Source: Blastocystis sp. Blastoise (taxonomy: Eukaryota; Protista; Bigyra: Opalinata). Taken from it: DNA of 64,000 nt. Shown piece after piece: positions 28,307-64,000 of this stretch. Where the stretch lies: the NCBI GenBank assembly GCA_039096225.1, contig JBBPEB010000009.1:992001-1056000 (forward strand), in the 5' to 3' direction. Made by a program: the position numbers and the translations under genes. The notes under the pieces were generated by a model, which saw only the letters and a program-made list of their open reading frames with translations, was not told where the DNA came from and did no database searches. Position 1 is the first letter of the stretch. The number at the start of each line of letters is the position of its first letter.

Positions 28307-31300
28307 ATGTCAGAACAAGTTGAAGAAAAGCCGAGTGACAAAGAAACTCAAAGTATACTGTTTTATTAGATATATAAAAATAATATGATAGTTAATTTCA
28401 TTTTCAATGATAATAAACAAGTATGCATCCCGTTGAGTATTTTGAACAAATATCCAGAGTGCTTATTATCGCTGAACTACAAAAATGAATATAATTTCTT
28501 AGAAGAAAATGATGCTTATTATATAGACTCACCTCCTTTATGTATTCAATTACTAATTCAATATCTAGAAGATCCTTTATGTATAAATTCTTTAACTTCA
28601 AACAGATTAATTGAATTATTCAATACTTGCAAACACTTTTTTGGTGAGAAACCTCTTTATTTTATTGCAAATATACGTGGATTATTAGTTTCTCGGATTT
28701 TAGAATTTGGTAGACAATATCATTGTTCAATGTAATTTTCATTATTTATTTTTGTTTTCTTATTATCATTTATCTTTTTGTTAACATGATTAGCTTTCTG
28801 GATAAGACGGTTCATACAGTATATCTTAATGATATGACAATAGATGGTATATTATAATTTAAATTCCTATTTTATTAGTCTATTTATATTTATTATTAGG
28901 TTTATTCACATCAGAAAGCCTAAAAGCTTTTCATAATTATTCAATTTTATTTGATTTTTTTAATATCAAAATCATCACTTTAGAATGTATATATATATAT
29001 ATAAGAATAAAGAAAATAAATACTCTATATTATTATATATAGTAGACTATTTTTCTGAAGATATACCTTATAAATATATATATCCCTCCGATTTACATAA
29101 AATATTCCCTAAACTTGAGAAATATACAATAGAATGTATGAAATATTTATTTATTAAATACTATTTTTCTAGATATAATTCTGTATAATAATTATCTATA
29201 TATATAGTATCTTATTATTTTTTGAATAAAGAGATATGTATATCTCCTTCTCATCCTCATTATAATGTATTATATAAAGAATATAAACGAATATATTATG
29301 AGAAATATTATCCTGAAGCTTATAATAGATATAAAGAAGAACATCCTGAAATAGAAAAAGATACATTGAGTTCAGATGAACTATATACAGATAAAACTAA
29401 AAAATCATCAAATAAAAATGAAAAAATTTATCATAATATTATACATATTAATATTGATGAAGAAATACAACGTGAAAAACAAGAAAATAAACCTAATTTA
29501 TTTATAAGATCATTATGTGATTATTCCCGTGATTATAATGCTAAAAAGAAGAAAACACAAAGAAATGAGGATAGTTTTATTATTGAATATGATCAAGTAG
29601 AATACGATAATCCTTTTCAAATAGTCTTTTTATTTGATTCTAATGATTGTATTTATTATTATTTTTTTTGCTTATTATTTATATTATTTATATTATTATA
29701 TATTAATTATATATTAATTCTATTATTTATATTGTTTATTGTATAGCAAAAAATAATGTACCATTTTCAATAGAGTATATATTTATATTTATTTTTCTAT
29801 GATAAGAATATACTTAAATCTCTATATTTATTAATTATATATATATTCATTAGAATCAAGAGAAAAAGTCAGGATATAGTAAATTATATGTTAAATATAC
29901 CAATTTGTAAGCAATGTAAAAATATTGAATTTACAAGTCAAAGTAGTATATAATATATTATGCTTATGTTGTTATATATAGATATATTATTATTATTATT
30001 ATTATTATTATTATTATTATTATTATTATTATTATTATTATTATTATTATTATTATTATTATTATTATTATTATTATTATTATTATTATTATTATTATTA
30101 TTATTATTATTATTATTATTATTATTATTATTATTATTATTATTATTATTATTATTATTATTATTATTATTATTATTCTTATTATTATTATTATTCTTAT
30201 TATTATTATTATTATTATTATTATTATATAGATACTGAAAAAGTTAAATTACAAATAGAAATTCCTTCATTTTTAAAAGCATTAAATAATGGAATTCTTG
30301 ATAATATAAATACTTTGAATATTACTCAATGTATATATATTATTATTATTATATATTATTTACTTATTATTATATATATAGTTATTCAACCAGGTTCTTA
30401 TCCTGAGTATATACAATTATTTAAAGATATTATTACTACTCATGTATTTCCAAATGTAACAAGATTGATATTAGATAGTATATCTATATATATAACTAGT
30501 TATTATATATATAAATAGATAGCTATGATATCCCTTCAATTAAACAACAAATTCAAATATTACTATTAATAACAAGAGAACATTTCCCTTTATTACATAT
30601 ATATGATTTATCAAATTTATTACAATATAATAATACTGAAGAAATCTCAATATTATTTATTAATCTCCTTCCAGATTGTATTTTTAAATATATAGATACA
30701 TTATATTTATTTACTTATGGTATCTATTATACTGTGTCTCCTTTTTGTACAAATAATAACAATTTAAGGAAATTAATTGATATTCATAACAAGTATAATG
30801 TTAAAATTCGTGGTATATATAAATATTATTATTATTATTATTGAGTTATATGAATATATAGCTACAATTCATGTTGATGAATATAATACATTATGGAAAC
30901 AATTATTGGATTCTGATGCTATCATACCCGAAAATATACTATTTCAAACAAGTATATATATATATATATATATAGATTTCTAAAGATAAACATATAGATC
31001 TATTATCATTTCATAAATATATTTATATTATATATATAGTGGATAACAAATATAATAATAATAATAATAATCCTTCGCTATTGGATATCAATAAATGTGG
31101 TGTTAATCAACTGTTTATATATATATGTGAAGATAAATCGATACAACAATATAAAGAAATATTTAGTAATATGAACTTTAAACAATTAGATTCTATATCT
31201 GTTAATAGTATATTTTTATATAACTATTAAATTATTCATTATACTATTTATATATATAGTTTTATATAATAATAATAATAAAAATTTTACTCTTGTAAAT

Positions 31301-61341: not shown

Positions 61342-64000
61342 ATGCAAAAAACAAATTGTCAAGAAAAACAAAGTATTCTTTCTATTCATACATACTAATC
61401 ATAAATATATAATTTATAAAGCGTCATTTATATTACATGATGTATCAAAAATCACAATTTCAAATTCTCTTCTACAAAAATATCCTAATTCCATGTTTTC
61501 TTTGGTATCTATGAATACTAATGATTTCATAGAAGAAGAGAAATCTTATTGCATTGATCTTTTATCTTTATCAATACATAAAATGATCCCATTTATGGAG
61601 AATGCAGAATTTCTTGATGTTTTATCTTCAAAAGATTTAATTTCAATTTATTCAGATATACATTATTTTTTTGGAGATGAATCCTATGAAGATAAGATAA
61701 AAATATATACATTTCTTTGGGATTCTTTAAATAATTTTATTGTGAATAATAAATGTGAACTGTATTTTATTTTATAAATATTTATAGAATAAATAAAAGT
61801 GATGAAATGAAAATAATAAGATATCAACTCATTATTCATGGTATATTTATTTCATTTTATTATTATATATATGAATGTATAGATCTCATAACAGAAGAGA
61901 GAAATGAATTATTCTGTCAATATTCTCCATTATTTGATTTCTTTAGTATTACAATTGTTACTTTAAAATGTATACATATATATTATTATATTAATTATAT
62001 ATATAGTTGATTTCTCTGAAGATATTCCTTACGAATATATATATCATTCCAATTTACATGAACTATTCCAAAACTAGAAACATTTCTTATAGAACGTATA
62101 TTATAATTATTTATTTTATTTATATATGAATTTATTTTATATAGCTTCTTATTATTCTCAAAGAAAAGAGATATGTATACCTCCTTCTGATCCTCATTAT
62201 ACTCTATTATATAAAGAATATAAACGACAATATTATGAAACTTATTTTCCAAAAGAATATTCTATTTATAGAAGATCAAAAACAGATAAAGAAAACAATT
62301 ATATATATAACAATTTAATTCATATATATCCAAAAGAAAAGAAAAAAAGTATTATGAATAAGAAAGAAAATAATATTTTTGACAAAGATATAGATATAGA
62401 TAAAGAAATAAATGAAGAGAAAAATGAAATATAATAAGATCTATTTGTTATACTTTCATATTATTCCCGTGATTATAATACACAGCAAATGGAGTTAGAA
62501 AAGAATAATTTATTATTATATAATAATAAATATATTTCTTATATGAAATTTATATTTATCCAAGATGGAGGTATATATATAGCATTAATATAATTTATAT
62601 ATATAGAACGAGATATACGACATCCAATTGTAGAGTATATAATTATATTTTATTTCTTTTGTACTCTATATAATTGAATGAATTATTTTATTATTAGAAT
62701 ATATTTATAATATATAAATATGAATAGATTATCGTTTATTTCGTGTTCAACAATACTCTTCTATTTACTTCATCTGCCAATAATGAAGCATATTAAGCAA
62801 CTAGTTACTCTTCGTATATATGTAATAACTATTCAATATATATACATTAGAGAATCCTAGAGTGAAGATTCAATTCGATATTCCTCCATTATTAATAACA
62901 ATTAGGGATGGATTAGTAAATACTATTATTATATTCAACATATTCAATTGTAATATATATAATCTATAATATTTATTGTTATTATATATATAGTTATTCA
63001 ACCAGGATCATGTCCTGAATATATACAATTATTTAAAGATATTATTACTACTCATGTATTTCCTAATGTAACTACATTAAAAATAACATGTATATATAAC
63101 ATATATTTCAAAATATTATATAAATAATAATATTTTTAGATTATTCCTATGATTTATATATACCTCTTTTACAAGAGATATTGCAATTAATAACAAGAAA
63201 TCATTTTCCAAAGTTGCATATATATGATATCAGCGATATTATTCGAAATGAAATTCATATATATAAAGAAAATCATAAATTTGTTTTATTTTATGAATCT
63301 ATAATACAACTAATGGATACTATAATTTATGATAAAGATATATTAACTAATATCTTAAAGAATGTTGTGTTTTATCCAGAAATATCAGAAGTTTTAGTGA
63401 ATACTAATAATACTAATTATTTTACTATTCAAGGTATATATAAATGGTATTATGTTATTATTATTATTATACTATATATATATGTTAATTTATGTTAAAT
63501 GAATATGATGTTGTGTGGAATAAGTTAATGAATTCTAAAGTTATATACTTTAATAATCTAATTATTGATTGTACATATATTATATCATTATTGTGAATAT
63601 ATTTATATATAATAATATTATTATTTCTATATTACTATAGTGTATAAAATGAAATATACTAGATTTGATATTTCTCAAATAAATCCAAAAAAGTGTATAG
63701 TTAAATCACTTATTCTTAATGCGAATTCATCTCAGTATAAGATATTAAATGAATTGAGGAATTGCATGAAAGATATAAATTAGAATGAACTTTAAACACT
63801 TTTTACTAATTGTATTCGTTTTGTTTTTATTCTCTATTTATTCTATTTATTATTATTTTATTAATTATATAATTTATAGTAAATCCATATGAAAATGAAG
63901 AGTATGAATATGATAGCGATGATGAAGATGATGAAGATGATGAAGATGAGAATATTAATGTGAATCAATATATTTATGAATACTTCTCATTTTTATCTGT
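61342..64000 (+). pseudogene. Subtype A BTB-LRR-like pseudogene, running off the window
   Basis: Colinear with 28307..33014 ([26 protein letters not shown]). In-frame TAA TAA at 62432-62437, TAG at 63781, TAA at 63793, and a lost AG acceptor plus apparent 1-nt deletion near 63484-63497. Confidence 0.8.

Follow-up and report, generated by a model that had tools for sequence, protein, structure and literature searches.

The F-box/leucine-rich repeat (LRR) and KCTD architectures have an established role as substrate receptors. KCTD proteins carry an N-terminal T1-type BTB domain followed by a variable binding domain, and many are Cul3 receptors; F-box/LRR proteins (FBXL, TIR1/COI1, Skp2) have a curved solenoid whose concave face varies, preceded by a conserved module that docks the ligase, undergo birth-and-death, and belong to F-box families expanded in plants, fungi, and nematodes. 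Here we describe a related repertoire in Blastocystis sp. Blastoise (tortoise isolate Rus-B), represented in a 64,000-nt stretch of contig JBBPEB010000009.1 (the window), where nine consecutive loci at 28307–64000 belong to BTB-LRR families (subtypes A and B) and BTB-TLDc families (T). Its members share the N-terminal BTB of the KCTD family but differ in that this domain falls below the Pfam cut-off (best BTB_2 E-value, 0.034 for B/A and 0.0016 for T, short of the gathering score), in their C-termini (a ~500-residue LRR solenoid, or a BTB-like domain plus TLDc), and in copy number, with more than 100 of each. The solenoid and its variable concave face behind a predicted docking module recall F-box/LRR proteins, although the BTB here replaces F-box plus Skp1, and a Pfam search of A and B gives no match, F-box included. 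T shares BTB_2 plus TLD with the BTB-TLDc proteins of Evosea, rotifers, diatoms, and Mucoromycota clusters, an architecture common among eukaryotes (Atlas scores, 0.95–0.97), and differs from them by an N-terminal helix, a second BTB-like domain, loss of the glycine equivalent to Ncoa7 G815, and fixed linkage to a BTB-LRR gene.

That linkage extends across the genome. Counted from match coordinates, there are at least 129 B, ~78 A-type, and at least 150 T loci, ~350 in all in a genome with 8,547 annotated genes; they fall into ~144 clusters spread over 26 contigs. A co-oriented T lies 4.7–6.7 kb downstream (median, 5.7 kb) of 54 of the 129 B loci, on 23 contigs, and not one of the 129 has a T on the opposite strand in that interval. 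With coordinates rounded to 0.1 kb, displacing T positions by as much as 10, 25, or 50 kb leaves 10, 7, or 4 pairs (maximum, 21), and shuffling strands leaves 18; by locus tag, 35 of 94 are adjacent, where the null gives 2–11. Chance co-location of B and T is rejected by both the position and the locus-tag nulls, and the non-random adjacency suspected in the first-pass annotation of this DNA holds genome-wide, far above the shuffled expectation. The spacer is part of the unit: that between B1 and T1 in the window (34971–36520, no strand, non-coding, about 1.55–1.57 kb, 17% GC) has collinear copies, nearly complete in length and 73–93% identical, at 26 sites, and diverges about as much as the genes themselves (70–77% for B and 77% for T). 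Other arrangements also recur, with A head-to-head with B at 20 places (null, 3.9) and with T at 16 (null, 3.4), T head-to-head with B at 11 (null, 1.7), and A tail-to-tail with T at 25 of the 78 A-type loci (null, 3.9). The B→T cassette is a real, genome-scale, and apparently undescribed feature; literature searches combining BTB and TLDc turned up no description, and the main text of the genome paper, Lind et al. (PMC10690189), makes no mention of BTB, TLD, LRR, or leucine.

We think it fairly probable that the array represents a local accumulation of dispersed duplications that overlap one another, within a lineage-specific BTB(T1) adaptor repertoire, and that the B-T pair is mainly a historical unit. 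The nine loci (A1, T1, B1, T2, psiA1, B2, T3, B3, psiA2) were recovered by gene models and protein mapping in the order and on the strands first assigned to them, and every type of junction between them recurs elsewhere in the genome, which makes the array a mosaic assembled from duplicated blocks that overlap. These blocks span multiple kilobases, are 80–93% identical, and have variable ends. The psiA2-B3 block has copies at 83–91% at no fewer than seven other sites on several contigs; the T2-B1-T1 block has a 92–93% copy ~150 kb away (39900–43376 corresponds to G000:C3:1185137-1188635 at 92%); the double TLDc-B2 block has copies at 80–82%; and the B→T3-type join is also found at G000:C2:389906-398082. 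The first-pass annotation read the array as a B gene followed by a TLDc gene three times over, of which B1→T1, on the canonical spacer, stands as the only canonical cassette in the window. B3→T3 is a partner swap, joining a different TLDc gene through a diverged spacer subfamily (54663–56620, no strand, 71% identical to the B1-T1 spacer over 322 nt), and B2..T2 is not a cassette, having no spacer homology and with T2 head-to-head with psiA1.

Turnover of the repertoire is as rapid as had been supposed, and proceeds by birth-and-death. Some cassette copies are young (B, 1–9% different), the youngest including WA158_003306/3307, 004234/4233, 006851/6852, 007358/7357, 004548/4549, and 004572/4571, and near-identical cassettes, inverted at G000:C18:416.9-422.6 kb and C18:521.9-528.4 kb and direct at G000:C8:2313-2319 and 2381-2387 kb, lie 70–110 kb apart, which points to very recent duplications. 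T and B can each break independently of the partner: T is open and its neighboring B broken at C8:2370.6, C26:27.5, and C26:287.2 kb, and the reverse holds at C33:676.5, C31:1269.0, and C14:548.6 kb. Two departures from the usual layout were seen at G000:C23:573949-575421, where two B genes are head-to-head ~0.6 kb apart, and at G000:C26:290983-296545, where a ~4-kb insertion interrupts a B→T spacer.

The gene trees of B and T are congruent, as had been anticipated, and the pattern of the congruence bears on its cause. For 33 B-T pairs, with orientation assigned from coordinates, distances correlate with a Mantel rho of 0.37 (p = 0.004), and 11 of the 33 share the same nearest neighbor. The strongest correlations join the parts next to the spacer, namely B residues 701–869 with the T N-terminus (0.53) and with its first BTB (0.52); B BTB against T BTB reaches only 0.27, and for the TLDc no part of B shows a correlation (−0.09 to 0.08). 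Congruence that fades with physical distance, and is nil for the TLDc, suggests shared duplication and conversion tracts rather than matched receptors and effectors, and neither the functional pairing through BTB-BTB contacts raised earlier nor an LRR-TLDc co-evolution is supported. Mosaicism is also evident within each gene, with a correlation of 0.15 between TLDc and first BTB in T, and of ~0.4 between BTB and LRR in B, against 0.6–0.7.

Structure models and fold comparison confirm both the BTB/T1 and the LRR solenoid folds, so that A and B each comprise a KCTD/T1-type BTB and an LRR solenoid. A family-alignment model of the B protein P0098 (predicted local distance difference test [pLDDT], 80.5; predicted template modeling score, 0.74) has 73 Foldseek matches at E ≤ 0.001, of which those listed are all LRR proteins (NLRP, NLRC4, internalin, COI1, and others); in VIA-align, the solenoid scores Z = 13.8 to RanGAP, 10.6 to TIR1, and 9.2 to Skp2, and the Atlas neighbors of the model are mostly F-box/LRR proteins. 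Residues 8–125 match KCTD-type BTB_2 clusters, with a template modeling score of 0.60–0.70 in each of the 10 rows. A PDB sequence search with A/B found no BTB; the BTB profiles of B and T are homologous (hhalign, 93%; E = 3.4e-7). The BTB exon of B has 28 matches among 1.84 billion representatives, and those named are all from Blastoise, as are all matches of the word searches; no relative outside the strain is among the named matches, although the other two tortoise isolates may lack deposited proteins. A metagenome scan returned generic TLDc domains only, with no B and no cassette.

Both families had been thought to start with a BTB, which holds for A and B, whereas T1 and T2 begin with a helix of ~50 residues and an acidic linker. 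In the T1 model (pLDDT, 81.5), a 49-residue helix and a disordered acidic linker precede a BTB at 93–197 (Z = 10.5, root-mean-square deviation ~3 Å to KCTD5/KCTD17), a second alpha/beta domain at 199–307, and the TLDc. The order of secondary structure in the second domain fits a BTB, and no profile or fold match to it was isolated. The TLDc is clear (Pfam TLD, E = 4.5e-24; Z = 19.5 and 2.1 Å to NCOA7), and the equivalents of the buried Ncoa7 residues G845, G896, and E938 are retained. The surface residue G815 is required in Ncoa7 for V-ATPase binding (PMC8608904), and at the equivalent position 87 T sequences have N (43), D (17), E (12), K (5), or other residues (at least 8), and never G. Loss of this residue in an intact fold makes a V-ATPase link doubtful, judging from a single mammalian mutant, and the V-ATPase-directed effector first envisaged for T fits poorly with 0 of 87. 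From its sequence, the T TLDc has probably left the V-ATPase, and the family represents a large TLDc clade without the V-ATPase contact glycine.

The concave LRR face of B evolves faster than the rest of the protein, at about twice the rate of other polar sites, in line with the initial expectation. In B1–B3 (three genes, dS 0.40, Nei-Gojobori [NG86] estimates from gene models that include some retained or skipped introns), omega is 0.42 for the BTB, 0.65 for buried strand sites, 0.76 for other (non-strand) polar sites, and 1.68 (1.22–2.31) for exposed strand sites taken from a rule-based set. These exposed sites are also more variable in 91 other paralogues (entropy, 2.22 versus 1.69 bits; p = 3e-5); outside the concave face, B is under purifying selection. 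Introns of the B models are in phase 1 in 57 of 60 cases, against 8 of 22 (phases 8/8/6) in the intron-phase control, a TOP3A-like gene encoding GRF and CCHC zinc fingers as well as Asn linkers at window ~17000–22768(−); a genome-wide phase-1 bias is rejected by these control phases. Exons of the LRR region are mostly 72–114 nt, with one repeat per symmetric exon.

In the duplication scenario that we favor, a core block of ~7 kb (B, the 1.5-kb spacer, and T) would have been copied to dozens of sites, by a route that may combine ectopic recombination with gene conversion among the copies themselves, and the rarer joins (psiA↔B, A↔T, T′↔B, and T→←A) would have arisen alongside it. By analogy with F-box/LRR or KCTD substrate receptors, the A and B products may likewise act as receptors in which the conserved BTB would oligomerize and probably dock a cullin, the variable concave LRR face would bind a changing set of cytosolic targets, whether foreign or selfish proteins, and one repeat per symmetric exon would ease repeat exchange. 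T may serve as an oligomeric BTB-TLDc adaptor, and B and T would co-travel mainly as neighbors in the founding block, with no matching of a B to its own T. The repertoire would then be a BTB-based counterpart, in an anaerobic gut stramenopile, of the F-box/LRR repertoires of plants and nematodes. Several points weigh against this scenario. An A or B occurs no farther than 8 kb from 98 of the 150 T, the relative arrangement taking several forms, and spacing is near-constant where linked T are up to 65% different and linked B up to 51% different; near-constant B-T spacing despite such divergence could result from selection to keep the pair. Block ends are readable for 30 loci only and otherwise come from match coordinates. 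A single locus, identified as a cullin by its Cullin and Cullin_Nedd8 domains, was detected (G000:C15:290059-292539), and Cul3 binding is not universal among KCTD BTBs (PMC4431850). Simulated neutral AT-biased evolution also yields NG86 omega values of 1.0–1.6, which makes the concave face unconstrained at the least and possibly diversifying; positive selection on it is suggested, not proven.

A functional coupling of B and T would explain the pairing differently: B may bind and ubiquitylate its linked T, as a selfish toxin-antidote element, or B may be a sensor with T as its helper, joined by BTB hetero-oligomers. Order and spacing fixed at 54 sites are consistent with this, as are the T genes head-to-head (16) or tail-to-tail (25) with A where the null is 3–4, and the homology of the B and T BTBs; PMC10531988 reports that KCTD BTBs can hetero-oligomerize. 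Duplication of a ligase receptor with its client is moreover a proven route to toxin-antidote elements, in the kss/fars-3-derived modules of Caenorhabditis tropicalis (PMC12680543), which likewise link a co-duplicated, fast-evolving ligase receptor to a second gene and have congruent trees, but number three against the 54 or more copies here. We nonetheless consider coupling unlikely, since no part of B co-varies with the TLDc and the BTB-BTB correlation lies under the linkage peak, ~40 T have their nearest detected A or B more than 10 kb away (A detection being incomplete), open T genes stand beside broken B genes and vice versa (rescue may act in trans), and the B3→T3 join in the window is a swap of partners. 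If coupling did prove true, against our expectation, the cassette would be a selfish toxin-antidote system, or one of paired intracellular immunity, that a gut protist has amplified more than 50 times, and the 33 natural B-T pairs provide material for distinguishing passive co-duplication from receptor-client coupling.

Dispersal over 23 contigs, with some copies young, would also be expected if the cassette were cargo of a non-autonomous mobile element, by Helitron-type capture or in a large DNA transposon. The genome does contain ~50 near-identical intact Helitrons (Rep domains in 1,200- to 1,680-aa open frames, in three to four young subfamilies on many contigs), and hairpin-like motifs occur at junctions upstream of B in two loci, L001 and L008. 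However, no intact Helitron occurs closer than 15 kb to any of the 129 B loci, where 5.8 such loci are expected, so that Helitrons and B occupy different compartments and Helitron adjacency to B is rejected; within the window, the cassette edges have no G+C hairpin or shared terminus, and homology stops at many different points. All introns are retained in the copies, so retroposition is rejected too, and we regard the mobile-cargo explanation as doubtful. Still less probable, in our judgment, is that A and B are cullin-independent signaling or defense receptors in the manner of nucleotide-binding LRR (NLR) proteins, with the BTB oligomerizing, the LRR sensing, and T either an unrelated passenger or a V-ATPase regulator. 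Their best PDB folds include NLRP/NLRC4 LRRs, and the one-repeat symmetric exons and variable concave face resemble the LRR-ROCO genes of Ectocarpus, which with NB-ARC-TPR genes form clustered, birth-and-death families in another stramenopile (PMC3341825). Yet a Pfam search of A and B detected neither an NTPase or kinase nor any other output domain, the GTPase or NB-ARC of the Ectocarpus candidates included, and the exons are unequal (72–114 nt), whereas the exons that shuffle in Ectocarpus are of equal length. For T as a V-ATPase regulator, retention of the TLDc core glycines and glutamate is set against the loss of the surface glycine.

The palindromes of the two loci just mentioned (L001:1110-1215 and L008:1225-1276) are G+C-cored with A and T arms, lie at homology breakpoints upstream of B, and are possibly small mobile-element ends. 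The cullin locus is ~4 kb from a B→T cassette, and C13:393465 gives a weak second Nedd8-domain match.

The window has a GC content of 16–27% and short GT-AG introns, and NCBI models WA158_000706–000711 fall in the array region; the large TLDc-gene exon at 33816–34970 has a 100% match in WA158_000706 and matches another 96 proteins, each of them from the same strain. A1 (28307–33014, +; gene model) is a subtype A BTB(T1)-LRR gene of ~20 exons encoding ~1030–1050 aa with an acidic insert, is tail-to-tail with T1, and is 25–29% identical to B proteins over ~480 aa (E = 1e-21). T1 (WA158_000706; 33433–34970, −), to which P0001 maps at 99–100%, has two exons and encodes 498 aa (helix, acidic linker, BTB(T1), BTB-like, TLDc). 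Beyond the canonical spacer, B1 (WA158_000707; 36521–40505, −; P0106 maps here) is a subtype B BTB(T1)-LRR gene with more than 20 exons, ~850 aa, and introns nearly all in phase 1. T2 (WA158_000708; 41740–43345, −; P0053 and alignment with T1) belongs to the T family, has its frame shifted by 2 nt near 43194, and is probably a young pseudogene, and psiA1 (~43650–44610, +), a truncated and frameshifted subtype A relic, was detected by tblastn and a model with a stop. The subtype B gene B2 (WA158_000709; 45681–49579, −; P0149) has 20 of 21 introns in phase 1, and downstream of it neither the canonical spacer nor a T follows.

T3 (52005–54662, −; gene model), the locus first listed as 2xTLDc, is a single gene of 843 aa with two TLDc domains (BTB, coiled coil, Asn linker, TLDc, TLDc). 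Its N-terminal half differs from that of T1 and T2 (BTB 24% identical, coiled coil, Asn linker) and places it in a small third family with five full-length relatives; the double-TLDc end is also found in many T-subtype genes. The subtype B gene B3 (WA158_000711; 56621–60414, −; P0133) is head-to-head with psiA2 (~61342 to >64000, +), a subtype A copy with a frameshift near 62070 and more stops, which continues past the window end; many of its sister copies have stops in the BTB exon.

Neither the canonical B1-T1 spacer, with no open reading frame (ORF) longer than 52 aa, nor the array spacers as a whole (17% GC), with no open frame longer than 86 aa, has an ORF of sizeable length, and a hidden gene in the spacer is rejected. 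Low-complexity tracts occur within introns, with a long (ATT)n tract in the A1 intron at 29946–30231 and nearly pure (TA)n in several B introns. Elsewhere in the window are an inverted paralogue pair at 1107–1676(−) and 2987–3661(+), 50% identical over 162 aa and with no Pfam match, a 603-codon Asn-rich frame at 6445–8253(+), also with no Pfam match, and a PCI-domain ORF at 12754–13845(+).

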